From Phaeosaccion multiseriatum (Eukaryota > Protista > Ochrophyta, other classes): 64,000 nucleotides of DNA. The position numbers were made by a program, and so were the translations under genes. The stretch covers positions 2,356,001-2,420,000 of the forward strand of contig OZ218950.1 of the NCBI GenBank assembly GCA_965112735.1. Direction: 5' to 3'. The notes under the pieces were generated by a model, which did no database searches, was not told the DNA's origin, and saw nothing but the letters and a program-made list of their open reading frames with translations. Shown piece after piece: positions 9,081 through 63,609 of the stretch; position 1 is the first letter of the stretch, and the number at the start of each line of letters is the position of its first letter.

Positions 9081-12000
9081 ACATCATCTTTGCGCACAGC
9101 AACGGCTCCTGCTCCTCTATCACCCCCTCGTGAGCCGCTGCCCCTTCGCCGTGGCTCTGCCTTCCCTTTCCCCCACCGGTAACGAGGTCGCGATGCCGCT
9201 GCTCCACCACCAGTGTGGCGAGGCCCTCTGCGGTGGGGTTCTGTAGCACCTCCGCCAGCGGCAGCTCCTCCTGCAGCTCAAACTGGTCCTGGAGCGTGTT
9301 GACCAGCTGCACCACGGCCAGAGAGTCCATACCCAACTCCAGGAAGGAGACAGTACTGTTGATACTCGTATCCGTACCAACAGCTTGGAGCTGGGCCTCG
9401 AGGTCCGCCTCCTTCAGAGGAGAGACAGCCCGCCCTTCTCTCATCTGCTGCTGCTGCTGCTGCTGCTGCCTCTCCATCTGGAAAATACGTGCAATCTCCA
9501 GGCAGGCATCCACCGCCTTCTCATGCACGTCTTCTTCGCTCTCGATCACCACTCGACCCCTGTGCGGAGAGTCATCTGGCTCATAGAGACCAGAGCACAT
9601 GAATACCAACGGCGGCCTTGCCGTTGTCTTCTTCCCTTCAGTTCTGCCTTCACCCGCACTTCCCCGCGGTACCGCCGCTGCCAATGCTCCCCAATTACTC
9701 AAGATAACGTGAGCATTCGTTCCGCCCACGCCATACGAGTGCACCGCGGCGATGAGCGTGCCTGCCCGAGCTCGCGCTCCACCTCCATCCTCGCTGCTGC
9801 TGCTGCCCTTCCAGTCCACGGGAGTCTTGAAAGTAGTGAGCTGCGAGCAGAGGGCGATGCGCGACTGCTCAATGTAGCCGAGCTCTGGGGACAAGTGCTC
9901 TCCATGCAGATTGGGCGGTGTCTGCTGGTGCTGAAGTACTAAAATGGCCTTAATGAGCTGCCCCAGTCCCGACGCACCCTCCATATGCCCCACACTGGTC
10001 TTCACCGCACCCACGCAGAGTGGATATATCCGCTCCCCGTTAACGCGTTGCTCCTCCTCAACGTAGACCCCGTGCAGAGCGCCCATCTCAATGCTGTCGC
10101 CCAGCACCGTGCCCGTCCCGTGTGCCTCCACGTATCCCACCTCACACGCTCGACGACTTGCGTCTCTCAATGCCCTCCTCATCACCTCTCGCTGTGCCAC
10201 GCCATTGGGGGCCGTCATCTGAGCGCTTTGCCCGTTGTGGTTGACTGCGCATCCTTCAATGACTGCCAGGATGTTGTCATGGTCCGCTTCCGCGTCCGAG
10301 AGACGCTTCAAAACGAGAGCTCCGCAGCCTTCCGCTCGGACATAACCATCAGCTCCGGCAGCAAAGGACGCCGTGCGACTGAGATGGATAGGAATCGATG
10401 GGGGGAAGACAAAAGGAAGGAATGAGAGAGAGAGTCGTCAAAAGCGGTGCCGCAACCAAGAAATCAATCATATGCGCCACAAAGCTTCCGCTTACCCTTT
10501 CTTAGAGAGCAGACCGGCCTTCCGGAGGGTAACAAAGCCTTGGGGGTGAAGAAGTAAGTTCACCCCCCCCACCACGGCTGTCTTGCACTTGCCCAGTCTG
10601 AGCTTGTCGCACGCGGCCTCCAGCGCAACAAGCGAGCTCGAGCACGCAGTGTCCAGCGTTAAGCTTGGCCCCACGAGTCCAAGCCGATTGCTGATGCGTC
10701 CGGCCACCAGAGAGGTACTCGTTCCCCCGAGGGTGTACGCATCAGGCTTCTGTGCACTGTCCGTCTGTACGGTCGCCCAGTCACTGCCGGATAGACCGAT
10801 GAAGACGCCCGTGTCTGAACCCTTCATGGCATACTTGTCCCAGTTCTTTGCCGTCATATTCCTCTCTTCCGGCGTCCCCTCGCGAAAAGCCTGCAAAGCC
10901 CGCCTCTGCAAGTGCTTCGTACGCTACTTGGAGCATCAACCGCTGATTCGGGTCCATGGTGCTGGCCTCGCCGGACGGAATGCCAAAGAGTTCATTATCG
11001 AAGCTCTGCAATTCATCATCCAAAAAGCCCCCGTGCAGCCCTAAAGTCTCCTCGCCCCACCCCTCGAAGGGGAGCCGAGTGGCACAGTCGACTCCATCGA
11101 CAAGATTCCCCCAGAAAGCGGCAGGGTTGTCTGCGCCGCCCGGGAAGCGACAAGCCATGCCCACCACCGCCAGCCCACGACGGCGGCGCTGACTCTCTGC
11201 CGTGAGCTCTCCTCGCGCTTGGTGGAGAGACTGCTCCTCTTCGAGCTCCGCACAGACTCGTTGCTGCGGTGCCCCTTCTTTGCTGCCATCATGCCCAGCA
11301 ACTCCGTGAGACAGTACTTCATCTTCGACCCATGCCGCCAATGCTGCCACCGTTGGATACGAGAAGAGTACGTCGCTGGTCACATTCACTCCAAAGCGAG
11401 ACTGCAGCCGGCCGCGCAGCTCCGCCGTTGCCAAAGAGTCAAGGCCTGCCTCCATCAGCGGGGTGGTGTCGGTCAGCTCTTCGGCACCCTCCCCAATCAG
11501 CTCCTTGGCTATATCCATCACCGCAAGGCTCACCATACGTTTCCGGTCTTCGGCGGACAGCCCCAGCAGCTCCTCGCGCACTTCATTGTTGAGTTCGGTG
11601 TTGCTGGACACGCCTGCTGCTGTTGAGACAAGCCCTGACAGCAGGAACGAGCCGCGGGACGCACCCAAGCTGTCTGCAAACTTGCTCCAGTCCATCCCAG
11701 GCAGAACGGCATAATCGCCCAAATGCGCTGACGACATCGCAGCGGCATCTAAGGCAGCCATGCCCAGCTCAGCTGACACCGTGCCCACACCAGCCAGCTC
11801 CAACTGTTTTTGAACGATATCGAGCTGGGCGGCCATACCAACGTCAGCCCACGGCCCCCACTGCAATGACGTCCCTGCGAGCCCGAGGTGTCGCCTGTGC
11901 CGCATCAGCCCGTCCACAGCCGCATTCGCTGCAGCGTAGTTGGCCTGTCCAGCGTTACCCAGTACTCCGGCCATGGATGTGAAGCAAAAGAAGAAGTCAA

Positions 12001-15000
12001 GGCCAGGAGCGCGCCCATCCTCCTTTGCCCAAGCCAACGAAAGCTCGTGCAAGTTCATCGCCCCCTGCACCTTCGGTCGGAAGACGTTCGTCACGCTCTC
12101 CACCGTTTGCTCTCCCAGGAGCTTATCATCCAGCACCCCGGCAGCATGCACCACACCGCGCACAGGGGGTAGCAGAGGCAGCACGCCCCCCAGGCAAGTC
12201 CGAAGTGCCTCAGCGTCAGCAACATCGCAAGTAGGAGTATGGATAGTCAGCTCCACATCGTTTCGAAGCTGCTGCCACTGCTGTCTCATGCTATTGGCGA
12301 CCTTCCTACTCCTTGACAACAGCACCAAGTGACGAGCGCCCCTCGACGCGAGGTGCTGGGCCGTCACGAGGCCGAGAGCCCCCAGACCGCCGCTGATGAC
12401 GTATGTGCCATCCGACACCACTGGCACACCATACGAGGGGTTGGTCAGCACCACCTTGCCGATGTGCTTCGCTTGGCTCATGTATACCATGGCCTTCTGA
12501 GTATCCTCCCTCATGTCAAAGGGTATGGTCGGCAAGGGCCTCACATTGCCAGACATGCAGTCTTTAGCAAGACGCTGCAGCCCGGCACTGATCCAGCCTG
12601 GCTCACCCGCCGAAAAGCCGACCTCGATAATGGCGTCCACAGCGACGAGGTTGTACCTCACATCGGGCCGGGCGGTGTGCATCTGCTCGTGACTCCATAC
12701 ACCTCTCTTCCCAATCTCCACGAATCTGCCTCCCTCTGTCAGCATGTCCAATGAGAAGGGAATGTAGTCTTCACTCAGTGAGTTGAGCACCACGTCCACC
12801 TTCATCTCACCCATGGACTGCTTGAATGCCTCTGCGTCTCTCGATGACGCAATGTGCTGCACTCCCAAGCTCCGGAGGAAGTCATGCTTCACAGCAGCAC
12901 CGGCAGTAGCGTACACGTCTGCGCCCACCCGCTGAGCATACTGCACGGCGGCAAGGCCCACACCGCCCGATGCGGCATGAATCAACACCTTCTCTCCAGC
13001 CTTAAGGTCGTGGAAGGCCTTCACTACCGTCAAGCACACCGTGGGAAGTGCAGCGGCCTGCTCGAAGCTCAGCCCGGCCGGCATCACGGCCAGACACACA
13101 TCACTCGTCGTCACATAACTGCGCAAACATCCTCCGTCCGCAAAACCAAACACTGCATCGCCGACACTGAAGCGCGAGCTTCCTCCCACACTGATCACCT
13201 GCCCGGCGAACTCGGAGCAAGGATCTCCAGGGTCGCCAGGGTACATGTCAAGCACATTCAGCACGTCTCGGAAGTTAAGGCCAACTGCCCTCACTGCCAC
13301 CTCTACGGAGCTGCCAGCTGGGTCAAGGGGCTGATGTTTGCCATGGTTCACATCATCGCGAAGGGCGAAAGCGTCGGCAATGCTGCCTCTTGCCTTTAAA
13401 TCAAGTGAGAAGGGAAGCTGCATGGGCTGACGTACAAGCTGAGGAGCCCAGCACTGTCCGTCGCGTACCCACACATCTTCTATGGCAGTAGGGAAGGCCA
13501 AGCCTAAGGCAAGCTCGCTGTCTTGGTCCTTCTTGCCGCTGAGGTCCACCACGCCAATCTGCAGGGAGGGGTGCTCCACTCTCGCAGTCCGCACCAGCCC
13601 AGTCACCCAGCTGTCACGCCAGTCCTCGCCGCTTTGGACGCCCCTCGTCAAGACCGTCAGCGGCACAGTCGACGTAGTGGACATGCTCCTGAGTAGCGAT
13701 AGCAGAGCGTAGACCGCTCGTGCTTGCGGGCTTCCTTCTGCTTCTTCTTCGCCAGCTCCGGGTACCAGCACGTACAACACGCGAGCCCACTCGTCCTGTC
13801 CAAGAAGAAGGGCACCATCGTCCCAGGAGGCGTCCACCCCCCCATATCGAGTGTGTATGTGCACGTTCTCCGGAACACAGTGCCGCACTGCAGCAATGAT
13901 TGAAATCTCTTCCTCCCTCTCGTCCTGTGGAATAACCACGAGCCACTTCTCAGCAGGGTCAGTATCACTACCAGGGGCCTCCTCCTGTGTAGACGACTCA
14001 GTGGTCTGCCATTTAAGCGTGTACATCACCCGACGAAGCGGATTGGGGCGCGCAAAGCCTCTCGCCCGCTGAGCCCGGAACCCACGCATCTCCAAAAGAA
14101 TCTGCTTGCTATCAAAGTCGGCAATCTTGATGTCAAACTTGATGCAGTTGCCCCCGGGCTCTACTTCACCGAGCGTCGTGTGCACCCAAACCGTCTCTCC
14201 CGTTATGGGGGCAGAAACGATCACCTCGTCAAAGCCAACAGGCAGGAATGGAGCTCCATCCCTCCCTCTCAGCAACTGGCGTGGGATTGCGTGCAAAAGT
14301 GAGTGAGTCGCATTGTCGAGCACCGCAGGGTGCAGAGCAAAGCCCGTCGCCTCCCAAGGCTCGCACAGGTCCGAGTCGAGAGCACGCACGACCGATAGCA
14401 CCTCTCCGTCATTGGCGAACATCTGTAAATTCCGCTCAAAGCGAGGGCCATAGTTGAAGTTGGCATCCGCCATGGCCTTGTACAGGCCATGGGCCAAGTC
14501 CAGAGTCCCTACCCGCCCCTTGATTCCCTCTATATCCAGCATTTCACGCGGCTCGGTTCGCTCCATGACAGACACGTGTTCCATCCTCGCGGTCGCTCCC
14601 TTGTCACCCTCAACGCCTCCGAAAAACTGCATGCTTCCATCGCTCGCGTGTAGAGCACTCAAGCCGTCACAGACAATAGTATTGCGGCTCTGCGCTTGGT
14701 CCGTGCCCGTGTGCTGGAAACCCTCAATCTCCAATGGAGCCACAAAGTTGGCTCCTTGCAGGACGACTTGCTGCTCCGCCCCGAGCCGTCTTCCTCCTAG
14801 AGCAGTGACAACACCCACTTCAATGTACGTCACCCCTGGAATGATCACTACGTTGTTGACTGCGTGGTCCTTGAGAAGGTCCTTGATGTGAGGCGAGAAG
14901 GGGCAAGAGAGCCGCATTCCGTCTCCCTCTTGGACCACCTCGCCGCTGGGCATGAATGCCAGTGGAGGCCTGAACCAACGAAACGCTTGGCGTGTGCGGT

Positions 15001-18000
15001 ACAATGCGCCACGCTCTGACTCGCTGTCCTTCTGAAGAGCATCGTTGAGACTGACGCCCTCTCTGTCGGCATGCGCGGCCGTACTCCCAGCTCTGGGACC
15101 GGATAGCACGGCGTGAGCATTGGTTCCGCCGGCACCGAAAGAGCTCACGGCAGCAACGAGCGCTCCTGTCCACCCGCCTTGACCCACGGGCTCCATGGTC
15201 ACAGGTAACGTCATAGGGACGCCCGCGAGCTCCAGCTCGGGGTTGATGTCCTTCAAATGCAGGTTCGGAGGGGCGACGCGGTGCTGCAGCACCAGTACGG
15301 TCTTGATGAGGCCTGCAATACCTGCTGCACCCTCCAGATGGCCGATATTGGCCTTTAGCGCACCTACCACCAAGGAATTTGCCTCGCTGCGGTCCGGTCC
15401 GCAGTACACTGCCTTAAGGGCGCTCATCTCGATGGGGTCTCCCAGCGCCGTTCCCGTGCCGTGCGCCTCCACGAAGCTCACCTCTGCGGGGTCCCTTCCC
15501 GCCTCTGCCAGAGCGGCAGACAGGAGCTGCTGCTGAGCAAGAGGACTGGGTGCCGTCAGACGAGCGCTGGCCCCATTGTGGTTGGCAGCACAGCCCTCGA
15601 TCACCGCTAGCACAGTGTCCCCGCTGGCCACAGCATCATCAAAGCGCTTCAGCACAATGGCACCACATCCTTCGCCTCTGACGTAACCATTTGCCGATGC
15701 GTCAAACGTCTTGCAGCGCCTGTCAGAAAGGTAGGTGAGGTGTGAGTGGGGTGCAACGGGAAGGTTTTGTTTAACTGTAGAGAAGACGCCCAAGAATGAG
15801 CTGCATGAGCAGCAATAGGATAAATGAATCAGAGTACGCTAGCGGCCAGTGCAACTTACCAGTCGGGGGAGAGGAAGGTCCCCGCAATCAAGGACTGAAA
15901 GGTGCTCTTCCCGAGCAGTAGGTTCACGCCACCGACCACCGCCGAGTCGCACTTGCCCAGGCGGAGGTTGCTGCAAGCAACGTCCAAAGCCACCAGGGAC
16001 GACGAGCATGCTGTCTGCAGCAACGCGCTGGGGCCGCAGAGACCCAGAGTGTAGGATACGCGATTGGCAATGTTCGAAGCCGTCAGGCCCATTCCACCGA
16101 AGGCGCTCTGAGCAGCGGCATCTCCTGCCACGAAGCCCCAGTCCGTGTCCGACAAGCCCACGAACACGCCGGTGTTGCTGCCCCGCAGGCTGCTCTTGCG
16201 GTGGCCCGCGCGATGGAGGGCCTCACAGGCCACCTCCAGCATGAGGCGTTGATTGGGGTCCATTACCTCTGCCTCGGCAGCACTGATACCAAAGAATGCA
16301 TTGTCGAACATCTCCACGCCCTCGATGAACCCTCCCTGTAGCTGCAGCTCGCCCGTCTTACTCTCCCACCTGTCGGGTGGCGCTGCCATAATGCAGTCTC
16401 TGCCCTCGCACATCATCGACCAGAACTGCTCCGGGCTATTGGCTCCACCGGGGAGGCGACACGCCATACTCACCACAGCGATGGGGGCTCGAGAGCTCGA
16501 GGACAAGTGCTGTCTTGTCAGCACCTCTTTACCCCCCTCTACATCATCCCGCACCTCAAGAATCTGGGCCTCGAGCCACGCGGCCATTGCAGACACTGAT
16601 GGATACGAGAAGAAGGCGCCATTCGAAACGGTGACACCACACCAGGCCTCGATTCGCTTGCGAAACTCTACGGACGCCATCGAATCGAGTCCGGCTTCCA
16701 TCAAGGGCATCGTTGCTGCCAAGGTGAAGTCCTCGCCAACGCACTCCACCACCATGTCCGTCAGGACTTGCTCGATCCTCTCCCGCCGTGCTGACTCCGG
16801 TAAGAGCAGGAGCTCCTCCTGCACCTCGGCGTTGATGCTGTAGCCCTTTGACGCCTCACCATTTTCTCCGCGGTCTGTCAATTGCCCGAGGAAATCGCTG
16901 TGCACAGGGGACAAGCTCGCTCGAAATTTGCCCCACCTCATGGCCGGCATGATGGCCACCTCCTGCACGTTGGCTTGCATTTGACTTGCAAGGACGGCAT
17001 CCAGAGCCTTCATACCCAGCGCCGATGAGATTAGGCCCACTCCGGCCATCTCCGCAGCTTTGGACACCATTTCAAGCCGCACCGCCATACCCACGTCGCC
17101 CCATGGGCCCCACTGAATGTTGGAACCAGGAAGGCCAAGCTGGCGTCGGCGGTACCGCATCAGCCCGTCCAAAGCAGCATTGGCCCCGGCATAGGCGCTC
17201 TGATTGGACAAGCCAAGCAAAGCGGAGGTCGATGAGTACGAGACGAAGAAGTCGATCTCGTCCCTGCCGCTCGCCACCCACTCAAGGCACAGCGCGTGGA
17301 GATTCCAACCCCCCTGGATCTTGGCGGCAAAGACATTTCGCACGTTCTCTTCCGTCTCGCCCGACAACATTCCCTTTTCGCCCGTCACACCCGCTGCGTG
17401 AATCACACCCCGAACATGAGGCAGCCCCATCAAGGCCGTTGCTACAGCCTCTCGAAGCTGGCCCATATATGACACATCGCAGGCCACGGCCACAGCGGTG
17501 ACACTCTCCATGCTCTGCAGGGCCTGCCACAGCTCTGAAACTTCTTCCGCCGCCTGGCCGCTTCGAGATAGGAGGAGCAGGTACCGAGCACCCTGGGAGA
17601 CCAAGTGATTCGCCGTCGCCAGACCCAGCCCCCCCAGGCCACCGCTGATCAGGTAGGTCCCATCCTCCCTGTACGCGAAGCGATCGACTCCTGCCGATGT
17701 CAGATGGAGTGTGCTGGGCACCAGCCTCGGAGCGAGGATCTTACACCCTCGAACCAGCAGGTCCACGCCTCGCGCTCCGTCGTGAGCTTCTGCAGCCAGC
17801 GTCACAGCCTGGGAGACAGTTTGGGCTTTCATCTCCTCTACTCTAGGTTGAGCACCCTCAGACTGTGGAGACATGGCACACTCAAGGTCCACGTGGTTCA
17901 CGGAGAGGTCGCCCCTCTCCAGGCGTATGCTTCTCACCAGTCCCACTGCCCAGCTATCCTGCCAACCAGCACCGCTGTACACACCCGTTGTCACCACGGT

Positions 18001-21000
18001 GATCGGCATCACTGCCTCGTCCCCGCCTAAGCTCTGTACAGTTTGCACAAAATGCATTGCGCCATCGGTAGGAGAGCACGTCCCTGACGCCAAGTAGAAG
18101 AGATGGGCCCCACGTGGCTGGGCGTTGGAACCGACTGCCTCCACCATGTGCACCTCTACGCCACTTGCTGTCGCCGCGCTTCCGATAGCTTCCAACGCTC
18201 TGTGGTTGCTCCATGCGTCCTGTTCTTCGGCTGCCTGGGGAATCACGACGAGCCACGGAAGGCTGCCGGTCAGCAAAGCCTGCTGCGAAGCCGTGGGCAC
18301 CTCCACCGCCTCCCACTCAACAACATAAAGCGGGCCCTGCTCCTCTTCACTCCACGTCTGAGGCGCTGCTGTGACTCGCGCTGTGCACCAAGGAAAGGCT
18401 TTGCGCGTTGGGAACAGGATGTGCTCCTTACACTTTCGCTGCTGTACTGTGCTCAGAGCCGCTCCAAACGAATCCTCAGAGCTCTTCCCGCGCGTGAGAG
18501 AGGAGATCCACGCCAGACCCTCGCGACGCTCGCACTTGGCTCCCATGCTGCTCAGCACAGGGTTGGGGCCCAACTCAACGACGCTCAGGTCAGCCCCCCT
18601 CCCGTCTCCCATCCAGTGCTCTACCAGCGTGTGGATGCCTTCTGCGAACAGCACCGGCGACAGCATGTGTTGCACCCAATACGTCGCCTGCGTCACCTCC
18701 TCCTCTCTCACCACCTCACCCGTCACGTTGGACACCAGGGGAAGGCGTGGGGTGCTGAATGACACCTGCCTCAGAACCTCCTCCAGCGCATGTACAGCGG
18801 GCTGCATCAGGGGCGAGTGGAAGGCGTGCGACACCTCCAGGGCCTTGCAGCCCACCCCATCTGCCGTGAGCTTCTCCACCACCTTGTCCACAGCGCTGCG
18901 CGCTCCAGAGATCACGCTCGCGCTCGGTCCGTTTGAAGACGCCAGCACCACCTCCGCGGCCCCCCCTGCAGCGTCGATGCTTGCCAAAGTCGCCTCCTTG
19001 CCTGCCCTCACTGCGAACATCACTCCCTTGCCCTCGGGGCAGGCCTGCATGGCGGCTCCTCTCTTGGCGGACAGCATCAGCCCGTCCTCCAGCGACATGA
19101 CGCCGGCCACGCACGCCGCCACTACCTCGCCCAGGCTGTGGCCCATCACCATGGAAGGCTCCACGCCCTCCGACTTCCACAGCTCACACAGGGCGTACTC
19201 CAGCACAAACAGGCACGGCTGGCAGTAACGCGTCTCCTTCAGCAGCGCTTGTGCACTTTCCTCTCCCTCAGCTGTAGGGTACATGAGCTCCACCACAGAC
19301 TTGTCCAGCCAGGCCCGCTCCATGAGCAGCCTACTGCACTGCTGCACGCACTCGCGGAACACGCCCTCCTTCTCGTACAGCTCCCTGCCCATGCCCACGT
19401 ACTGCGAGCCCTGTCCGGTGAACAGAAACGTCACCGGTGAACTCTTCTTGCCTCGCTGTCCATCCAGCTGCAGCAAGGCTTCGCTCTCGCTCTCCTCTAC
19501 CATCGTCGATCTGAAACTGCTGAGCACCGCATGGACGTTGGCTCCTCCCGCGCCGAAGGAGCTGACAGCAGCAGTGCGCCTCTCCCCGTCCCTGGCACTT
19601 AGTGGCACCATCGTAGACGGCAAATTCACCGGAAAGCCATCCAAACGAAGCTCCGGATTGAGCTTCCTCATGTGGAGATTGGGGGGAGCAGATCCGTGCT
19701 GAAGGACCAGCAGAGCTTTGATGAGGCCAGCGATTCCGGACGCACCCTCTAGATGCCCGATATTGGTCTTCACCGCCCCAACCACCAGGGGCCGGGCTTC
19801 CTCGCGGCCGTGGCCATACACGGCTCTCAAAGCACTCATCTCGATGGGGTCGCCGAGAGAAGTCCCGGTGCCGTGCGCCTCCACGTAATCAACCTCCAGA
19901 CCGCTCACGCCGGCCTCCGCCAGTGTCTGCTCCATGAGACGCTGCTGAGCAGATGGGCTCGGGGCAGTGTAGCGCAAACTTCTCCCGTTGTGGTTCGCAG
20001 CGCAGCCATTGACGACAGCGAGGATGTGGTCGCCATCGGCCTGTGCATCGTCCAGTCGCTTCAGTACCACGGCGCCGCAGCCCTCACCTCGAACATAACC
20101 GTTGGCCGCAGCGTCGAACGTCTTGCAGCGCCTGACCATGAGGAATTGAGGGTTTGCAAAAGTGAAGAACAGACAAGAGGTAATCCATCAGGAACAGGGG
20201 CCTTTCAGATAGCTTGGGCCTTTTGATATGGCTCTCGTAGCGGCCCTAAGAACAAGCTCCGCCCACACAAAAGAGACACGCACTTACCAGTCAAGACTCA
20301 GGAAACCTCCTTCGGCGAGGGTCTCGAACGTCTGTGTACCCAGCAGCAAGTTGACGCCTCCCACCAAGGCGATGTCACACTTGCCCAGTCGTAAGCTGCT
20401 GCAGGCCCCCTCCAGTGCCACCAAAGACGACGAGCACGCCGTGTCGACACTCATGCTCGGCCCTCCGAGGCCCAGCACGTAAGACATCCGATTTGCCGGA
20501 CTCGCATTGGACATGCCCATGACGGAGTACGCACCCTTGTTCGCATCGTCTACCACTGAGCCCCACTCGCTGCCGGACATACCCACGAACACACCGGTGT
20601 TGCTGCCATGTAGTGTATCCTTGCGGTATCCCGCCCTGTGCAGAGCCTCGTACCCCACCTCCAGCATGACGCGCTGATGAGGGTCCATGGCACCCGCTTC
20701 GGCCACAGAGATGCCGAAGAAGGTGTTGTCAAAAGCCTCCACTCCATCAATGAAGCCCCCTTGCCACTGCTTCTGACCCTCATCGGCCCAGCGACCAACA
20801 GGGCTGGCTCCAATACAGTCTGTCCCTGCACAGAGCATAGCCCAGAAGTCCTCGGGGCTCTTCACCCCTCCAGGGAAGCGACAGGCGATCCCGACGACGG
20901 CCAGCGGCGCCCTTGAGTCAGCGCGGTGCGCTTCAGCCGCGATCGCCGCAGAGCGACTGCTAGAGGGTTCCTCTACCTCGCCAAGCACCTCCGCTTCGAT

Positions 21001-39000: not shown

Positions 39001-42000
39001 CCGCGCGGCTACCCAAGCCCGCATCCTCTACGAGGGCCTCAAGCATTGTCGAGCCACCAAAAGCCCCCGGCGCAGATACTTGCCAGTCCATTCCCGGCGC
39101 CACCAGGAGCTCGCGTGATGCCGCAGATGGGGATGACACGCTGGCATCAAGCGCCGCCATACCCAATGCATTGCTGATGAGCCCAACGCCGGCCATCTCC
39201 AGACTGGCCATGGCAACTTCGGACCGAGCGGCCATGCCAGCTTCGCCCCACGGCCCCCACTGGAGGGCCACAGAGCTGGAGTGACCGAGGCGCCGACGAT
39301 GCTGCATCAGCCCGTCCACAGCAGCGTTGGCTGCAGCATAGTTGGCCTGGCCTGCATTGCCAAGCACACCTGCCATGGATGTGTAGGACACAAAGAAGTC
39401 CAAGGGCCAGGCCATCTGCACCGACAGCTCGTGCAGATTCCAAGCGCCCTCCACCTTCGGCTTGAAGACCTCTTCGATACTCTCGGGCGTCTGGTCCACC
39501 AGCAAGCGATCGTCGAGCACGCCAGCAGCATGGATGACACCTCGCACGGGCGGCATGCAGCTGAGCGCCGTGCCTAGGGCCTTCTCAAGCGACTGCGCGC
39601 TAGACACGTCGCACGATACAGCCTTGGTGCTCACCCCGCCGGCCACGGTGAGAAGCTCCTCCCACAGCGCCTGGGAGTCCGCCTTGACTTTTCCCCCTCG
39701 CGAGAGCAGTACAAGATGATGAGCTCCTTTATCGGCCAAATGCTTCGCAGTCGCCAGCCCCAGCGCCCCCAGCCCACCGCTGATGACATAAGTCCCGCCT
39801 CGCACGACGGGAATACCACACTCAGGGCTTTTGAGCACAACCTTCCCTATGTGCTTCGCAGTTCTGAGGAAGTTCATTGCATCCGCAAGCTCATCCCTCA
39901 AGTCGAATGTCTTCACTGGTAGCGCCTCGGCCCTGCCCGCCTCGCTGCCCGCTGTCAGCTGCTCCAGCCCAGCGAACGCCCAGCCCTGCTTCTCGGCCTT
40001 GAAGTCGTCTGCTATCATGCAGTCCAGCGCAATCATCTCGTACAGCACGTCGGGCCTGGCAGCCTTCATCGCCTCCCTGGTCCACACGCCTCGCTTGCCA
40101 ATCTCCATGAAGCGCCCGTTCTTCGTCAGCAGCTCCAGAGAGTAAGGGATGAAGTTGTCCGACAGGCAATTGAGTACCACATCCACCTTCGCAGCTCCAA
40201 TGGAAGCCTTGAAGGCCTCCGCATCTCGCGACGACGCAATGTGCTTCACACCCAGGCCTCGCAAGTAGGCGTGCTTCTCAACGGATCCAGCAGTGGCGTA
40301 GATCTCCGCTCCGATGCGCTGAGCAATCTGCACGGCCACCAGACCCACTCCACCTGACGCGGCATGGATGAGCACCTTCTCACCACGCTTCAAGCCAGCG
40401 AGTTGCTCGAATGCATGCACCACTGTGAGCCACGCGATAGGCAGCGCTGCCATGTCCTCGAAGGTCCTGTTGGAAGGCATGTTGGCCAGACACACGTCAC
40501 TTGTCGTTACGTGGGAGCAGAAGCAGCCCTTGTCCGGAAACCCGTAGACCTTGTCTCCCACTTGAAAGCGCGACTTTCGCGATGATCGAGTGACCACCCC
40601 CGATAGCTCGATGCCAGGCTGTCCAGGGTCGCCAGGGTACAGGTCGAGCACATTCAGCACGTCTCTGAAGTTGAGCCCCACCGCCTTGACACAAATTTCA
40701 ATCTCCCCGTCCTGCAAGGCAGTGTCTCTCTCGGAAGGGAGTATGTCTCTGCGCTTCAAGCCTCCCTCGATGGTTCCCCTCGCCATGAGATCGAAAGAGA
40801 AGGGAAGGCTGACTACCGAGGAGCGAGTCAGCTGAGGCGTCTTGCATTCTCCTCCTTGCACACGCACATCTTGACTCTGGAGGGGAAGACCCAACGCCAA
40901 GCTCAAGTCCTCCACGTTCGCTTCCACGACCATGATGTGCATCTCTGGCCGCTCGATGCGAACGGAGCGAATCATGCCAAACACCAGCATGTGTGCCCAT
41001 CCCTCGCCTCCCCCGCTCAGCGTGTCTTGTAGTAGCACCATCAAGGGGACTGGTCTCTTGGCCAACTGCTGCGTTACCGCCAGCAGCTTCTGTGCTCCCT
41101 GCTGAGCGGCGCTGGCTGATGACATTGCCGTCTGTCCCTCCCCTCCTCCACCGCCGAGCACGTAAAGCACTCGCGACCACTCGCTCCTCTCCAAGCCTCT
41201 CACCACATGCTGGTCATAGGCACACTCCTGCACACGCAGCGTCACGTGCTCGGGCACGGATTGCTCAATACGCTTCACCAACGCTGCAGCTGTACTTACT
41301 CTATCTACCAAAGCCAGCCACGTCTCCTTCTCCATACAAAACTTCCCCGGGGTGGTTGCCAGAGCCAGAGCCTCGTCTGGCTGCCACTCCAGATAGTATA
41401 AGGCTCGACGAAGAGGGTTCAGGAGCGTAAAGCCCTTGGCCCTCTGCAGCTTGACGCCCTTCATGGTCACGAGCACGTACTGGCTGTCAAAGTCGGCAAT
41501 AACAATGTCAAAGTTGACGCTGTCGCGCTTGTCGCTGATCTCGGTGAGCACGGTATGCACCCACACCTTTTCTCCTCTGATGGCGCCCTTCGCAACGACG
41601 TCTTTGCATCCAGCTGGCAAGAATGTAGCACCCTGGGTCAGCTCAGAAGGCAGAAGCGCAAGCATGGTGTGTGCGGCACTGTCCAGCACGGCGGGGTGGA
41701 GGTAGAATCCACGCACCTCCCACTCAGAGCACAGGCTGGGGTCCTGCGCTGTCGCCACGGACAGAGCCTGTCCCTCGGCAGCGTACAAGCGCTCTGTCCG
41801 CCTGAAACGGGGGCCGAAGTTGAAGCCGACCTTAGCGAACGTGGCGTACAGCTCACCCGAAATGTCGCGCTGCCCCACTGCCTCCTGGATGCTCCTCACG
41901 TCCATCATTGCAGTAGCCTCTCTTGCCTCCAGCACCACTGACGCCGCCCTGGCTACAGCCTCACCTGCCTTGCCGCGGGGGCCGCCCGTGATCCGCGTCT

Positions 42001-45000
42001 TGCCGTGGGCAGAGAGGAACACGTTTACCTCCGAGCATGCCACTGTCGTGGACCCATCCACCAATCGCTCCACGCCAGGCACACTGGCGCCTGCCACCTC
42101 CAGCGGGGCCGTGAAGACGAGGCCCTTCATGCACGCCTGGCCATCGGCGGGGAAGGCCTCGCCCCTCAGTAGCGTGGCCAGGGCCAGCTCAATGTAGCCC
42201 ATGCCCGGCATGAGCACCACCCCCCCCACTGCGTGCTCCTGCAGCAGGCCCTTGAGCCTTGGAGAGAATGGGCAGGACAGCAGCACCCCGCCCTTCTCAT
42301 CTCGCACCCCTCCACTCGGGCAAAAAGCGTGATTATCGCTCTTGTACCACGGGAAGGCCACACGATTCGGGAAGAGCGCCTCCTCCTTGACGAAGGGGCC
42401 CCCATCGCCATTCATGCCAGCCATCGGTACGGACTCACGCTTGTTCCCGTAGCTCCTCAGCAGCACGTGTGAATTCGTTCCTCCTGCCCCGAACGAGCTA
42501 ACCCCCACCAACACGTCTTCCTCGTCCTCCAGCTGCACCATCGCCGACGGGAGCTGCACGGGGAAGCCGTCCATGTCCAGCTCTGGGTTGATGCTCTCGA
42601 GGTGGAGGTTGGCGGGCACCGCGCGGTGCTGCAGCATCAAGACGGCCTTGATGAGCCCAGCAATGCCCGCCGCACCCTCCAGATGGCCGATATTGGTCTT
42701 GACCGCACCCACTACCAGCGGGAAAGAGTCGGCGCGGTTCTTTCCGTACGTGGCCCTGAGAGCGCTCATCTCGATGGGGTCGCCGAGCGAGGTGCCCGTG
42801 CCGTGCGCCTCCACGATGCGTACCTCGGAGCCCTCTCGACCGGCCTCACGCAGCGTCGCCTCGATGAGTCTCTGCTGGGCGGCGGGGCTGGGGGCAGTGA
42901 GGCGGGCACTGGTTCCGTTGTGGTTCACGGCACAGCCCTCAATCACAGCGAGGACCGTGTCTCCGGCAGCGAGGGCGTCATCTAGGTGTTTCAGCACAAC
43001 GGCACCGCATCCTTCACCACGCACGTATCCGTTTGCCGACGCGTCGAACGTCTTGCAGCGCCTGAGAAGGGCATGGGAATTGTGGGGTGGGGTGAGGTAA
43101 GTTGACTTCAATGGCACTCAAGTCGTTCTCACTGTGCGACTTGCCAGAGAGGCGATGGCCAAAGGGGGAAGAACAACAGGAATGGAAGCACTCCACACTC
43201 ACACGCACATACCCGTCGGGCGATAAGAAACCACTTCCCTTCAGCCTTTCGAAGCTCTGCGTGCCGAGCAACAGATTCACTCCGCCCACCACGGCTGCGT
43301 CGCACTTGCCCATGCGTAAGCTGCTGCAAGCGCTGTCCAGGGCCACCAGAGAGGACGAGCACGCCGTGTCAGTGGTCATGGACGGGCCCTGCAGTCCGAG
43401 CGTGTACGACAGACGATTGGACACGCTTGCCCCTGCTGCGCCCATGGTGCTATACACGCCTGTCGACGACGAGCCTTCCCCGCGTGCTCCCCAGTCACTG
43501 CCGCTCATGCCCACGAACACTCCGGTCTGACTGCCACTCAGGCTTTGCTTGGTATAGCCCGCAGTCACAAGCGCCTCCAGTCCCACCTCCAGCATCACCC
43601 GTTGGTGTGGGTCCATGGCAGAAGCCTCAGCACTGGTAATGCCGAACACAGATGAATCGAACATTTCCACGCCGTCGATGAAGCTTCCTTGCCACTGCTG
43701 CTCATCCTCCTCCTTGCTCGCCCAGCGGTCGAGCGGAGCAGGCTGGACACAGTCCTTGCCATTGCTAAGCATGGCCCAAAACTCCTCTGGGCTGTTCGAA
43801 CCACCTGGCAAGCGGCACGCCATGCCCACCACCGCCAACGGTGCCTTCATGTCGCCCCTCTGGTATCCAATCGACTCACTCTCACCCTCATCATCCTCCT
43901 CAGATCCCATCACCAAGGCTTCCAGCCAGGTAGACAGCGCTACGATTGAGGGGTGACTGAAGAGCACGTCGTTGGGGACGGACACGCCGAAGCGAGCTTG
44001 GAGTCGACTCCGGAGCTCCACCGTAGACATGGAGTCCAGCCCAGCCTCCATCAAAGGCGTATCAGCCTCGAGCACGGTGCCCGCTTCACCAATGCATGCC
44101 GTTGCGATCTCCGTGATGACGCCTTCCAGCATGGGCTTCCGACTCGGCTCTGGCATCTCCAGCAGGTCACGCCTCACGGCAGCAGTAACGTTATTCCCCA
44201 CCCCGTTTCCCGCGCGGCTACCCAAGCCCGCATCCTCTACGAGGGCCTCAAGCATTGTCGAGCCACCAAAAGCCCCCGGCGCAGATACTTGCCAGTCCAT
44301 TCCCGGCGCCACCAGGAGCTCGCGTGATGCCGCAGATGGGGATGACACGCTGGCATCAAGCGCCGCCATACCCAATGCATTGCTGATGAGCCCAACGCCG
44401 GCCATCTCCAGACTGGCCATGGCAACTTCGGACCGAGCGGCCATGCCAGCTTCGCCCCACGGCCCCCACTGGAGGGCCACAGAGCTGGAGTGACCGAGGC
44501 GCCGACGATGCTGCATCAGCCCGTCCACAGCAGCGTTGGCTGCAGCATAGTTGGCTGCAGCATAGTTGGCCTGGCCTGCATTGCCAAGCACACCTGCCAT
44601 GGATGTGTAGGACACAAAGAAGTCCAAGGGCCAGGCCATCTGCACCGACAGCTCGTGCAGATTCCAAGCGCCCTCCACCTTCGGCTTGAAGACCTCTTCG
44701 ATACTCTCGGGCGTCTGGTCCACCAGCAAGCGATCGTCGAGCACGCCAGCAGCATGGATGACACCTCGCACGGGCGGCATGCAGCTGAGCGCCGTGCCTA
44801 GGGCCTTCTCAAGCGACTGCGCGCTAGACACGTCGCACGATACAGCCTTGGTGCTCACCCCGCCGGCCACGGTGAGAAGCTCCTCCCACAGCGCCTGGGA
44901 GTCCGCCTTGACTTTTCCCCCTCGCGAGAGCAGTACAAGATGATGAGCTCCTTTATCGGCCAAATGCTTCGCAGTCGCCAGCCCCAGCGCCCCCAGCCCA

Positions 45001-48000
45001 CCGCTGATGACATAAGTCCCGCCTCGCACGACGGGAATACCACACTCAGGGCTTTTGAGCACAACCTTCCCTATGTGCTTCGCAGTTCTGAGGAAGTTCA
45101 TTGCATCCGCAAGCTCATCCCTCAAGTCGAATGTCTTCACTGGTAGCGCCTCGGCCCTGCCCGCCTCGCTGCCCGCTGTCAGCTGCTCCAGCCCAGCGAA
45201 CGCCCAGCCCTGCTTCTCGGCCTTGAAGTCGTCTGCTATCATGCAGTCCAGCGCAATCATCTCGTACAGCACGTCGGGCCTGGCAGCCTTCATCGCCTCC
45301 CTGGTCCACACGCCTCGCTTGCCAATCTCCATGAAGCGCCCGTTCTTCGTCAGCAGCTCCAGAGAGTAAGGGATGAAGTTGTCCGACAGGCAATTGAGTA
45401 CCACATCCACCTTCGCAGCTCCAATGGAAGCCTTGAAGGCCTCCGCATCTCGCGACGACGCAATGTGCTTCACACCCAGGCCTCGCAAGTAGGCGTGCTT
45501 CTCAACGGATCCAGCAGTGGCGTAGATCTCCGCTCCGATGCGCTGAGCAATCTGCACGGCCACCAGACCCACTCCACCTGACGCGGCATGGATGAGCACC
45601 TTCTCACCACGCTTCAAGCCAGCGAGTTGCTCGAATGCATGCACCACTGTGAGCCACGCGATAGGCAGCGCTGCCATGTCCTCGAAGGTCCTGTTGGAAG
45701 GCATGTTGGCCAGACACACGTCACTTGTCGTTACGTGGGAGCAGAAGCAGCCCTTGTCCGGAAACCCGTAGACCTTGTCTCCCACTTGAAAGCGCGACTT
45801 TCGCGATGATCGAGTGACCACCCCCGATAGCTCGATGCCAGGCTGTCCAGGGTCGCCAGGGTACAGGTCGAGCACATTCAGCACGTCTCTGAAGTTGAGC
45901 CCCACCGCCTTGACACAAATTTCAATCTCCCCGTCCTGCAAGGCAGTGTCTCTCTCGGAAGGGAGTATGTCTCTGCGCTTCAAGCCTCCCTCGATGGTTC
46001 CCCTCGCCATGAGATCGAAAGAGAAGGGAAGGCTGACTACCGAGGAGCGAGTCAGCTGAGGCGTCTTGCATTCTCCTCCTTGCACACGCACATCTTGACT
46101 CTGGAGGGGAAGACCCAACGCCAAGCTCAAGTCCTCCACGTTCGCTTCCACGACCATGATGTGCATCTCTGGCCGCTCGATGCGAACGGAGCGAATCATG
46201 CCAAACACCAGCATGTGTGCCCATCCCTCGCCTCCCCCGCTCAGCGTGTCTTGTAGTAGCACCATCAAGGGGACTGGTCTCTTGGCCAACTGCTGCGTTA
46301 CCGCCAGCAGCTTCTGTGCTCCCTGCTGAGCGGCGCTGGCTGATGACATTGCCGTCTGTCCCTCCCCTCCTCCACCGCCGAGCACGTAAAGCACTCGCGA
46401 CCACTCGCTCCTCTCCAAGCCTCTCACCACATGCTGGTCATAGGCACACTCCTGCACACGCAGCGTCACGTGCTCGGGCACGGATTGCTCAATACGCTTC
46501 ACCAACGCTGCAGCTGTACTTACTCTATCTACCAAAGCCAGCCACGTCTCCTTCTCCATACAAAACTTCCCCGGGGTGGTTGCCAGAGCCAGAGCCTCGT
46601 CTGGCTGCCACTCCAGATAGTATAAGGCTCGACGAAGAGGGTTCAGGAGCGTAAAGCCCTTGGCCCTCTGCAGCTTGACGCCCTTCATGGTCACGAGCAC
46701 GTACTGGCTGTCAAAGTCGGCAATAACAATGTCAAAGTTGACGCTGTCGCGCTTGTCGCTGATCTCGGTGAGCACGGTATGCACCCACACCTTTTCTCCT
46801 CTGATGGCGCCCTTCGCAACGACGTCTTTGCATCCAGCTGGCAAGAATGTAGCACCCTGGGTCAGCTCAGAAGGCAGAAGCGCAAGCATGGTGTGTGCGG
46901 CACTGTCCAGCACGGCGGGGTGGAGGTAGAATCCACGCACCTCCCACTCAGAGCACAGGCTGGGGTCCTGCGCTGTCGCCACGGACAGAGCCTGTCCCTC
47001 GGCAGCGTACAAGCGCTCTGTCCGCCTGAAACGGGGGCCGAAGTTGAAGCCGACCTTAGCGAACGTGGCGTACAGCTCACCCGAAATGTCGCGCTGCCCC
47101 ACTGCCTCCTGGATGCTCCTCACGTCCATCATTGCAGTAGCCTCTCTTGCCTCCAGCACCACTGACGCCGCCCTGGCTACAGCCTCACCTGCCTTGCCGC
47201 GGGGGCCGCCCGTGATCCGCGTCTTGCCGTGGGCAGAGAGGAACACGTTTACCTCCGAGCATGCCACTGTCGTGGACCCATCCACCAATCGCTCCACGCC
47301 AGGCACACTGGCGCCTGCCACCTCCAGCGGGGCCGTGAAGACGAGGCCCTTCATGCACGCCTGGCCATCGGCGGGGAAGGCCTCGCCCCTCAGTAGCGTG
47401 GCCAGGGCCAGCTCAATGTAGCCCATGCCCGGCATGAGCACCACCCCCCCCACTGCGTGCTCCTGCAGCAGGCCCTTGAGCCTTGGAGAGAATGGGCAGG
47501 ACAGCAGCACCCCGCCCTTCTCATCTCGCACCCCTCCACTCGGGCAAAAAGCGTGATTATCGCTCTTGTACCACGGGAAGGCCACACGATTCGGGAAGAG
47601 CGCCTCCTCCTTGACGAAGGGGCCCCCATCGCCATTCATGCCAGCCATCGGTACGGACTCACGCTTGTTCCCGTAGCTCCTGAGCAGCACGTGTGCGTTC
47701 GCTCCTCCTGCCCCGAACGAGCTCACCCCCACCAACACGTCTCCCTCGTCCTCCAGCTGCACCATCGCCGACGGGAGCTGCACGGGAAAGCCGTCCATGT
47801 CCAGCTCCGGGTTGATGCTCTCGAGGTGGAGGTTGGCGGGCACCGCGCGGTGCTGCAGCACCAATACGGCCTTGATGAGCCCGGCAATGCCCGCCGCACC
47901 CTCCAGATGGCCGATATTGGTCTTGACCGCACCCACTACCAGCGGGAAAGAGTCGTCACGGTTCTTGCCGTACGTGGCCCTGAGAGCACTCATCTCGATG

Positions 48001-51000
48001 GGGTCGCCGAGAGAGGTGCCCGTGCCGTGCACCTCAACGTAGTGCACGTCCAAGCCATCAAAGGCGGCCTCGGCAAGAGCCTCCTTAATCACCTCCTGCT
48101 GTGCAAGTGGGTTGGGTGCAGTAAAGCGCACGGACCTGCCGTTGTGGTTCACAGCAGACCCAGTCACCACGGCGAGAATGTTGTCACCATCGGCCTCGGC
48201 ATCATCCAGTCGCTTCAGCACAACGGCACCACAGCCCTCACCCCGCACGTAGCCGTTGGCCGATGCATCAAAGGTTCTACAGCGCCTGATGGCGCGGATA
48301 GGGCATGACAGAGGCAATGAGATGGATATTTGTGAGCAATCCACAGAGGGGTATCAACCGTACAGGTGCATAGCTGCAAGCCGTTCCCTCCCCCACGCGA
48401 GATGCCCTGCCAGAAAACAAGAGAAAAGAGCACGCCCACTCAATGCACTTACCAGTCAGGTGAAAGGAATCCCCCCGCTGCGAGAGCTTCGAAGTCATCG
48501 GTACCCAGGAGCAAGTTTACGCCTCCCACCACGGCGAGATTGCTCTTGCCCCGTCTCAAGCTGCTGCATGCGGCATCCAGCGCAACCAATGATGACGAGC
48601 AGGCAGTGTCTACACTTAAACTCGGTCCCCTCAGCCCGAGGACAGAGGACATTCGGTTGGCAGGACTTGCGTTGGACGTGCCCATCACGGAATATGCGCC
48701 TTTGTTCTCATCTGCAACCACCAAGCCCCAGTCGCTCCCAGACATGCCCACAAACACGCCTGTCTTGCTGCCCTGTAGTGTGCCTTTCTCGTATCCAGCC
48801 TGGTGAAGGGCTTCGAATCCCACCTCCAGTATGAGTCGCTGGTTGGGGTCCATGGCCTGTGCCTCGGCGGCCGAGATGCCGAAGAAGGCGTTGTCGAACA
48901 TCTCCACTCCGTCAATGAAGCCCCCGTGCCACTGCTTCTGCTTGCCATCGTCTGCCCAGCGGTCGACAGGCGCCGCACCAATACAGTCCGTACCTGCAGA
49001 CAGCATGGCCCAGAAGGCCTCGGGGCTGTTCGCACCGCCAGGGAAGCGGCACGCCATGCCAATAACGGCCAGCTGCGCGGTCGAGTCGGCTTGGTTCCGT
49101 AGAGTGCTTGCACCGCCAATAGAGCGAACAGTGGGAGATCCTGTGTCCGCTCCAAGCACTTCCGCTTCCACCCACGCAGCCACCGCTGCTACGGTCGGAT
49201 TGGAGAAGAGCACATCGCTGGACACGTTCACCCCAAAGCGAGACTGCAGCTGGCCACGCATCTCTACCAGTGCCAGCGAATCAAGGCCTGCCTCCATCAG
49301 TGAAGTATTGTCCCTCAGCTTCTCCCCGTTCTGCCCTAGATAACTCCTCGCTATGGCCATCACTTCGGTCGTCGTTGAGCGTTGACTCTCGTCGCGAGGC
49401 GGCTTCAAGGCCATCTCCGTCTCATATGTCTCTTTCGCCGAGGCCAGATTTATCGGAGGACGACGCATCTGAGTACAAGGGACTGCGGGCCACGGGAAAG
49501 CTGTCTTCATCCTCGTGTCGTCCTTTCCTCGCTCGAAGTGAGCAACCTGTGCAGCTCCCTTCCGGATTAGAACATGGGCGTTGACTCCCGATATGCCATA
49601 GCAGTGCATGCCCGCCACACTCCCCTCAAAGGGAGCGTTCCCTGCGCCAGCAGAGGGCAGCCGTATTGCTGCATTGTCCACTTCCAAGCGAGGATGAGGC
49701 GTATAAAGGTGAATATTCGGCGGGACAAAGCCGTGCTGAAGCGCGACCACAGTCTTGATCAGCGCCAGCATGCCTCCGGCGCCCTCCAGATTTCCCATGT
49801 TGGGCTTGGTGGTGCTCACGAGAAGAGGCGCCACCACTGATGTGGATGAAGTGCTGGTCCTGCTACTGCGCAGCTCGCTCTGCAACACGCGGAGCTCCAT
49901 GGCGTCTCCCATCGGTGAGCCCAGACCATGTGCCTCGACAAAGCCCACCTCTGAAGGCGCCACACCCGCCTGCGCGAGCGCCTGCTTCACGGCCTTCCGT
50001 TGAGCGTTTTCATTCGGGGCAGCGATGCTGGCCTTTTTGCTGCTGCTGCTGCTGCTGCCGCTGCTGCTGCTGCCGCTGCTGCTGCTGCCGCTGCTTTGCC
50101 CCTCGTCCTGACACCCGTTGTGCGTGAGGGCGGACGCAAGAATGACCCCGAGCACTCTGTCGCCGCTCGCCTCGGCGTCCTCCAAGCGCTTCAGCACGAC
50201 CGCCCCGCACCCCTCACCCCTCGCGTAGCCATCACCGGCGATATCGTAAGCAGCGCACCGCCCAACCTTGGACAGTAGCTGCAGCTTGGCCATCCAGTCG
50301 AATGCGAAAGGCAAGGACATGATGTTGACACCGCCCACCACTGCAGCAGTCACCTCGCCGCTGCGCAAGCTCGATACGGCCGCGTGGATGGCACCAAAGG
50401 AGGACGAGCAGGCCATGTCGAATCCCATAGAGGGCCCTCCGAGACCGAGGTGATGACTGAGCCGGCTTGCCACGAAGCTTGGAGCACCGCCCACCAGGGT
50501 GTAGGCCCCAGTCTTTGGCACCCTCGCAACGCCCAGCTTCGCCTCCTCACCCTGGTCCTCGATACATTGGGATAGAAACCACTCGACGTTGTTGCACCCC
50601 ACGAACACACCCGTGGAGCTGCGACCGTGCTTTGACTCTGAGCTGGTGCCTGACAACTCTCCGCCTCCCATACCCGCATTGATCATGGCCGCGTCCGCAA
50701 CCTCCAACATTATGCGGTGGTTCACATCCATGTGCTCAGCCTCTCTATGCGTGAGCCCGTACTTTCTGTAGTCGAAGAGATGTGCGTCGTCCAAGAACGC
50801 TCCCATTCTGGCATACGTGTGCTGTCCGCTGCCCACCTCTCCCCACCGGTCTGTGGGAAAGGGCCCGACAGCATCGATGCCCTCGCAGAGGAGCTGCCAC
50901 AGACGCTCAGGGCTGTCAGCGCCCCCGGGGAAGCGGCACGCCATGCCCACAATGGCGATGTGCTTCGATGCAGAGGGATGTGGTGGCACTGCAGCTGGTG

Positions 51001-63473: not shown

Positions 63474-63609
63474 CTGCTCGCAGCCGCAGGGCACACGCAG
63501 CAAATGGAGGTGACTGGAGGGTGAGCTAGGGGGTGGTCGAGCCGTGCTCATCAGGCTCATAAAAAAAGGACAATCTCAGACCCAAAGAAACACTCCCTGC
63601 TCATCCTGC

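Follow-up and report, generated by a model that had tools for sequence, protein, structure and literature searches.

The 64,000-nucleotide (nt) window analyzed here (positions 2,356,001 to 2,420,000 of contig OZ218950.1, assembly GCA_965112735.1) originates from the ochrophyte Phaeosaccion multiseriatum, whose assembly comprises 67 Mb in 22 contigs. The window has a G+C content of 58-62%, and its minus strand harbors a giant gene encoding a modular type I polyketide synthase (PKS), in which one and the same codon of nine ketosynthase (KS) coding regions is split by an intron. A Pfam scan revealed successive sets of KS, acyltransferase (AT), dehydratase (DH), enoylreductase (ER), ketoreductase (KR), and acyl carrier protein (ACP) domains in the order KS-(AT)-(DH-ER-KR)-ACP and in a single reading direction, as expected of an assembly-line enzyme. 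Within the window, the gene starts at its N-terminal side with the C-part of a loading-type KS, in which the catalytic cysteine is replaced by serine. It continues with a first module (ACP, KS, AT, DH, ER, KR), three ACPs, two crotonase-type domains, an HMG-CoA synthase (HMGS), an intron-free KS, an ACP, and then seven module exons. The C-terminal end is made up of a final KS, another ACP, and a membrane tail. All features described below are located on the minus strand, and positions refer to the window unless stated otherwise.

A preliminary description of the window had listed nine intervals as introns splitting one glycine or tryptophan codon in phase 2, and our analysis agrees: all nine are bounded by GT and AG on the minus strand and measure 117-167 nt. 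The codon, TG-G (Trp) or GG-G (Gly), is cut after its second base (the hyphen marks the intron) between the sequences ...FLSxD and RCKTFD. In the direction of transcription, these are I1 (61322-61466, 145 nt, Trp codon, FLSKDW-RCKTFD), I2 (48286-48452, 167 nt, phase 2), which sits in a mosaic KS, I3 (43062-43212), I4 (37853-38003), and I5 (32644-32794), which are identical to each other (151 nt), I6 (26399-26547, 149 nt) and I7 (20132-20287, 156 nt), which share 89% identity, I8 (15720-15859, 140 nt), and I9 (10379-10495, 117 nt). The latter interrupts the last KS, where RTASFA instead of RCKTFD follows the split codon (LLSKKG-RTASFA). Removal of the intervals restores the reading frame at the window junctions. 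Introns of the I1 type, both in the window (61459-61466) and in paralogues, open with the palindrome GTACGTAC.

The intron is located inside the KS, between the catalytic cysteine and the catalytic histidine pair, and not in a linker between folded units. Each of the extension KS carries the motif TACSSS with the catalytic cysteine upstream of the intron, and the motifs HGTGT and NIGH, which provide the two histidines, are found in the C-half encoded by the next exon (inspected in one KS). Thus, the active site of each KS is built from two exons. The intron had been placed just after the active-site cysteine; it does lie downstream of this residue, but the split codon is 49 codons away. With respect to the profile PF00109, which has 252 positions, positions 3-222 match before the intron and positions 223-252 directly after it. 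In a local KS profile, positions 220 and 221 flank the intron, and the match becomes continuous once the intron is removed. For these local profile and coordinate alignments, the KS halves were joined in local scripts only, with an X at the split codon.

Between successive introns lie the module exons, which we refer to as A to G. The lengths previously given for A to F are exact (5073, 5058, 5058, 6096, 6111, and 4272 nt) and all are multiples of three; each of these exons is a single open frame and is symmetric, with phase 2 on either side. In each exon, the domain order also agrees with the proposed unit, which begins with the C-half of one KS, includes the ACP, and finishes with the N-half of the following KS, and it bears out that the ACP is grouped with the N-half of its downstream KS: Ketoacyl-synt_C is followed by AT (D, E, and F), DH-ER-KR (KR only in F), PP-binding, and ketoacyl-synt. 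Exons A (43213-48285, 5073 nt), B (38004-43061, 5058 nt), and C (32795-37852, 5058 nt) encode KS-C, DH, ER, KR, ACP, and KS-N and have no AT; C differs from B by one base (34589). Exon D (26548-32643, 6096 nt) encodes KS-C, AT, DH, ER, KR, ACP, and KS-N, and exon E (20288-26398, 6111 nt) is ∼98% identical to it beyond the KS. Exon F (15860-20131, 4272 nt) encodes KS-C, AT, KR, ACP, and KS-N, and exon G (10496-15719, 5224 nt or 3n+1) again KS-C, DH, ER, KR, ACP, and KS-N. No other intron is present in these module exons (∼37 kb in total). The crotonase (ECH)/HMGS cassette has an intron every few hundred bases and contains most of the approximately five further introns found between I1 and I2.

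Two KS of the gene depart from the rule. The intron-free KS following the HMGS domain (49562-50971) is uninterrupted. In the first KS, the C-part of which occupies positions 62971-63486, an intron is found 14 codons past the usual site and in phase 1, as read in the paralogous locus L017, and a second intron is located near the KS end. The off-site intron is long, of low complexity, and GA/CT-rich. NTASSS replaces TACSSS in this KS (63486-62971; L017:1-500), which is therefore without the catalytic cysteine and probably a decarboxylating or loading-type KS. A different irregularity is seen in exon G. Compared with the intact, 98%-identical paralogue L009, the N-half of the last KS shows a one-base length difference near position 10842 that shifts the frame and accounts for the exon length of 3n+1, and the upstream frame stops near 10784. 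A second intron in the last KS was considered and rejected, since the break is accounted for by this one-base difference. This points either to an error of the assembly or to a gene that is interrupted ahead of its terminal KS-ACP-membrane tail.

The distribution of KS matches indicates that the interruption is a genome-wide feature. In a whole-genome Pfam scan, about 100 KS N-parts end at profile position 220-233, and in each case positions 218-252 are briefly matched ∼150 nt further on; uninterrupted matches were obtained for only three KS in the genome. A strict pattern of donor, gap, and acceptor built on the junction yielded 42 matches on 8 contigs and none in a reversed control. For a closer inspection, junctions and recombination breakpoints were read in a sample of 20 other loci of at most 10 kb each (190 kb), representing about half of the PKS clusters. 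Here, 28 additional junctions were identified at the same codon and in the same phase, with intron lengths of 112-489 nt. Together with the pattern search, these junctions show that the shared position is not due to chance. All 37 junctions (window and L002-L020) combine a donor GTAAGT, GTACGT, GTATGT, or GTGAGT with a (Y)nAG acceptor. The split codon specifies Trp in 25 and Gly in 12 of them. Bacterial KS domains have Gly in the corresponding PDGRCK motif, and Trp at this codon seems to be a peculiarity of this KS family.

The intron is common to KS clades that are only 37-50% identical at the protein level and are thus roughly as distant from each other as from the best bacterial matches (47-52% identity). 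Protein searches with whole exons and a search across all proteins returned mostly bacterial multi-module PKS; the only eukaryotic match with a named source was a protein of Chrysoparadoxa australica with 46% identity over 37% of the query. One metagenomic open reading frame (ORF), P0300, is 65% identical to the KS of this genome, and no sequence of the genome matches it above 67%. The KS N-halves of the genome end at the corresponding residue of P0300. Its match stops exactly at FLSPDG and is followed by YV..., which corresponds to GTAYGT read in phase 2. Two scans of metagenomes with DNA patterns (donor plus acceptor, and acceptor plus downstream codons) gave no match. A related observation concerns animal-type fatty acid synthases (FAS): more than 20 ORFs of this type from public assemblies (P0431, P0475, P0485, P0505-P0525) are near-identical up to MLSPDG and a subsequent K or E and then diverge. 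Judged from the sequence of their tails, these ORFs would fit an intron starting with GTAAG or GTGAG in the same Gly codon, but in phase 1 and thus one base earlier than the phase-2 intron of the Phaeosaccion KS.

Two intron families with 14 and 20 copies were tested, and all 34 matches are located inside PKS gene clusters; every match that could be cross-checked sits at a KS junction. This confinement shows that the KS introns are not dispersed mobile introns, and an origin as introners or as a transposon-derived intron family was rejected for lack of copies outside the PKS clusters. Within KS families, intron substitutions (0.06-0.09) are about as frequent as differences at third codon positions, whereas positions 1 and 2 are three to four times less diverged. 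Introns also vary in length between copies, as seen from gaps in their alignments, unlike the exons, which were compared without gaps. The similarity to third positions fits a plain co-inheritance of unconstrained introns with genes under purifying selection. Introns of different KS types do not align, reaching only the chance level of ∼50% in global alignments.

The window itself contains two recent tandem arrays, the ends of which could be mapped. Array 1 (32016-48031) consists of three copies of 5209-5224 nt and ends in coding sequence of the KS C-half. Over 5.2 kb, a single base distinguishes module B from module C (up to 99.98% identity), and A equals B from 47681 downstream except for a 15-nt indel. 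At the upper end of the array, identity fades between 48031 and 47681, i.e., 250-600 nt downstream of I2, and at the lower end between 32284 and 32016. Array 2 (18500-31980) comprises ∼2.15 copies of ∼6260 nt and extends from just after a KS to the end of an AT. The two introns inside it, I6 and I7, are 89% identical, compared with 98-100% for the exons and 99-100% for those directly flanking the introns. Blocks found by blastn start at 48289 and 32647 and thus suggested duplications bounded by the intron. This candidate was rejected by base-by-base comparison, according to which the tracts start 250-600 nt further on; the blocks only appeared to begin at the introns because extension stops at diverged introns. 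The KS interrupted by I2 is a mosaic, with an N-half nearest to one KS type and a C-half that turns into the type of modules A, B, and C (ABC type) 250-600 nt further on. In paralogous genes, the ABC-type module is present one to three times.

A comparison of N-halves, introns, and C-halves of 35 KS provided a broader view on such joints. In 29 of the 35, a cognate pair of N- and C-halves is found across the intron, and the ABC-type C-half is paired with four different N-half types. Two independent chimeric lineages, both in other loci, have their joint at the intron. In L007_8883 and L013_8820, the C-half is 98-99% identical to the ABC type but the N-half only 68-72%, and the ABC identity begins 22 nt inside the 3′ end of the intron. 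L016_2002 and L017_7034 are 88-98% identical to the F type across the whole upstream exon and ∼20 nt of the intron, with 96-98% up to this switch point, and then 90-92% identical to the ABC-type C-half from ∼12 nt before the acceptor. The intron has thus sometimes been the joint between KS parents. An identity-switch scan of the 1.2-kb KS coding sequence detected about eight independent breakpoints, two of which fall at the intron. The others were located at about –437, –277, +263 to +303 (the I2 KS of the window), +403, and +463 nt, and a further hot spot was found at the KS end. Hence, the earlier proposal that modules are duplicated or deleted by recombination in introns is only partly supported: it does not hold for either array of the window, both of which end in exons, while the two chimeric lineages elsewhere do switch within the intron.

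Taken together, these data make it likely that a single old KS intron, copied along with modules and genes, explains the fixed position. One spliceosomal intron would have been gained once in a KS, in phase 2 of a G/W codon 49 residues past the catalytic cysteine, and would then have been copied passively with each duplication of a module, gene, or gene cluster. As an outcome, nearly every chain-extending KS of the genome would hold the intron, and each exon would open with a KS C-half, contain the ACP, and close with the N-half of the following KS. The symmetry of the exons would then be a consequence of shared origin and not a device. Most rearrangements of modules would proceed through homology in coding sequence, namely in the C-half of the KS, the linker behind the KS, and the end of the AT, as seen for both recent arrays of the window. 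Occasionally, the intron would serve as the joint or as the edge of an exchanged segment and give rise to a viable chimeric KS, as observed for the two lineages described above. The KS intron itself is most likely removed constitutively. Several points weigh against this explanation. Splicing of the intron and its constancy are deduced from DNA. Since introns of different KS types cannot be aligned, a single origin is not demonstrable from intron sequence. The putative FAS intron in the same Gly codon suggests that the site may attract introns. Finally, two of the about eight breakpoints lie within ±20 nt of the intron, which is more than the ∼3% each expected by chance (p ∼0.03, although few events were counted) and suggests that the role of the intron may not be entirely passive.

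The lack of similarity between introns of different KS types and the FAS ORFs would also be expected if the site were a hot spot, i.e., a proto-splice site or the target of a mobile intron, that had gained introns many times independently. Such recurrent gain appears very improbable, given that codon and phase are identical in 37 of 37 junctions, that intron families follow KS families and have no copies elsewhere in the genome, and that the loading-type KS and the KS behind HMGS have no intron at the site. There is hardly any reason to assume that the intervals are not introns or that the identical modules are an assembly error. The single base separating B and C over 5.2 kb and the frameshift near 10842 might point to an imperfect assembly or gene, but removal of the intervals restores both the frame and a continuous KS profile match, and the intervals accumulate substitutions as third codon positions do and gain length changes, unlike the flanking exons. 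Moreover, the arrays have unique, graded flanks, and the contiguity of the assembly (22 contigs for 67 Mb) argues in the same direction. A more active role of the intron would be that of a frame-safe joint, kept for the shuffling of module exons, with recombination or the edges of gene conversion in introns as a main route for the insertion, deletion, and reordering of modules among the many paralogous PKS genes. This is compatible with the symmetry of all exons, with the two lineages that switch parent in the intron, and with the ABC-type C-half behind four N-half types. We nevertheless regard it as unlikely as the main route, because both recent arrays terminate in exons, the other breakpoints are exonic or at the KS end, and 29 of the 35 KS have cognate halves across the intron. 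In addition, a diverged intron that merely halts gene-conversion tracts would produce the same picture as a crossover within the intron.

The same-phase introns also raise the possibility that whole modules, e.g., one of the three identical, fully reducing modules or the single KR-only module, are omitted during splicing in a regulated manner, resulting in shorter or differently reduced products. As previously noted for this gene, phases and exon lengths are such that every skip between I2 and I8 keeps the frame. Loss of B or C would yield a protein identical to that of a two-copy allele, and the natural in-frame chimeric KS indicate that mixed halves can be tolerated. However, most skips would generate combinations of KS halves not seen among the 35 KS examined, and the splicing architecture points in another direction. 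Short introns are typically recognized by pairing of splice sites across the intron, and the usual error of such intron-defined splicing is intron retention rather than exon skipping; regulated cassette exons are typically short and/or have weak splice sites. The module exons, with 4272-6111 nt and near-consensus donors, do not resemble a typical cassette exon, and the introns between exons of 4.3-6.1 kb measure only 117-167 nt and carry near-consensus donors and YAG acceptors. Large exons and short near-consensus introns favor constitutive removal of each KS intron. Retention would end or shift the frame; with a GTAAGT donor, for example, TGG is directly followed by TAA. We therefore give the use of these introns to leave out modules a slim chance. 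If it occurred, one gene could provide a product series differing by C2 units or by one hydroxyl group, and modules would be skipped in a programmed manner at the RNA level; to our knowledge, no assembly-line enzyme is known to work in this way. The literature searched contained no account of a KS intron in every module or of modules being skipped by splicing.

Two further observations concern the surroundings of the module exons. In the first module, an in-frame stop codon (56800-56802, minus strand) separates the ER from the KR coding region and lies inside an apparent further intron at 56740-56870 (minus strand; ends approximate), for which the GT donor would directly follow ...TPTRN and the acceptor would be CAG. 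A tandem paralogue of the giant gene is found 11 kb past the window (G000:C1:2431001-2458500; L009 and L010). The number of its modules is roughly half that of the window gene, and the order of the KS types differs. The two genes share 98% identity in their first and in their last KS.

The arrangement described here combines features of several known systems. In exon shuffling, exons between introns of the same phase can be duplicated, deleted, or moved in frame, and the joints of the resulting mosaics lie in introns. The brown alga Ectocarpus reportedly provides an example of such shuffling of symmetric exons in its leucine-rich repeat (LRR) cassettes. Whereas classical shuffling uses introns in linkers, the Phaeosaccion intron is located inside a catalytic domain, and most rearrangements do not make use of it. 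In bacterial modular PKS, recombination takes place in or next to the KS, and tracts of high identity end in the KS C-half or in the KS-AT linker. Phaeosaccion resembles these systems in that the moved unit roughly extends from behind one KS to the next KS and is not the KS-to-ACP module, but, in contrast to the intronless bacterial genes, its PKS has a second type of joint inside the KS, at the intron. Neighboring modules of algal type I PKS were previously shown to be near-identical (89-98%), suggesting growth by module duplication (Shelest et al. 2015; PMC4661987). The arrays of Phaeosaccion are alike in this respect, with up to 99.98% identity; that study gives no intron positions within modules, whereas here each of the duplicated units has one intron at a fixed KS codon and the exonic array ends were mapped. 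For the giant PKZILLA genes of Prymnesium parvum, the part of the preprint available to us describes repetitive modules and canonical GT-AG introns, with 34 introns in total in three genes and dozens of modules distributed over 17 and 12 exons (bioRxiv 10.1101/2024.01.29.577497). Introns are thus far fewer than modules in PKZILLA, and that part of the text mentions no per-module periodicity, whereas each extension module of Phaeosaccion has one intron, and its codon is the same throughout. Module duplication and exon shuffling are known themes, and the fixed per-module KS intron is a variant of both.

The presence of one intron at the same codon in about 110 KS gives a concrete view of how assembly-line enzymes are put together and rearranged in a eukaryote, with modules multiplying mainly through exonic homology. 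The near-coincident position of the putative FAS intron raises the question of whether the site is old or has been hit repeatedly. Halves of different KS are joined exactly at the intron in at least two natural enzymes. These chimeras are under purifying selection, indicating that a fusion point after FLSxD[G/W] is tolerated in nature, which is a lead for PKS engineering. The fixed intron can also serve as a marker to tell PKS contigs of eukaryotes and bacteria apart in metagenomic data and to follow the history of this family.

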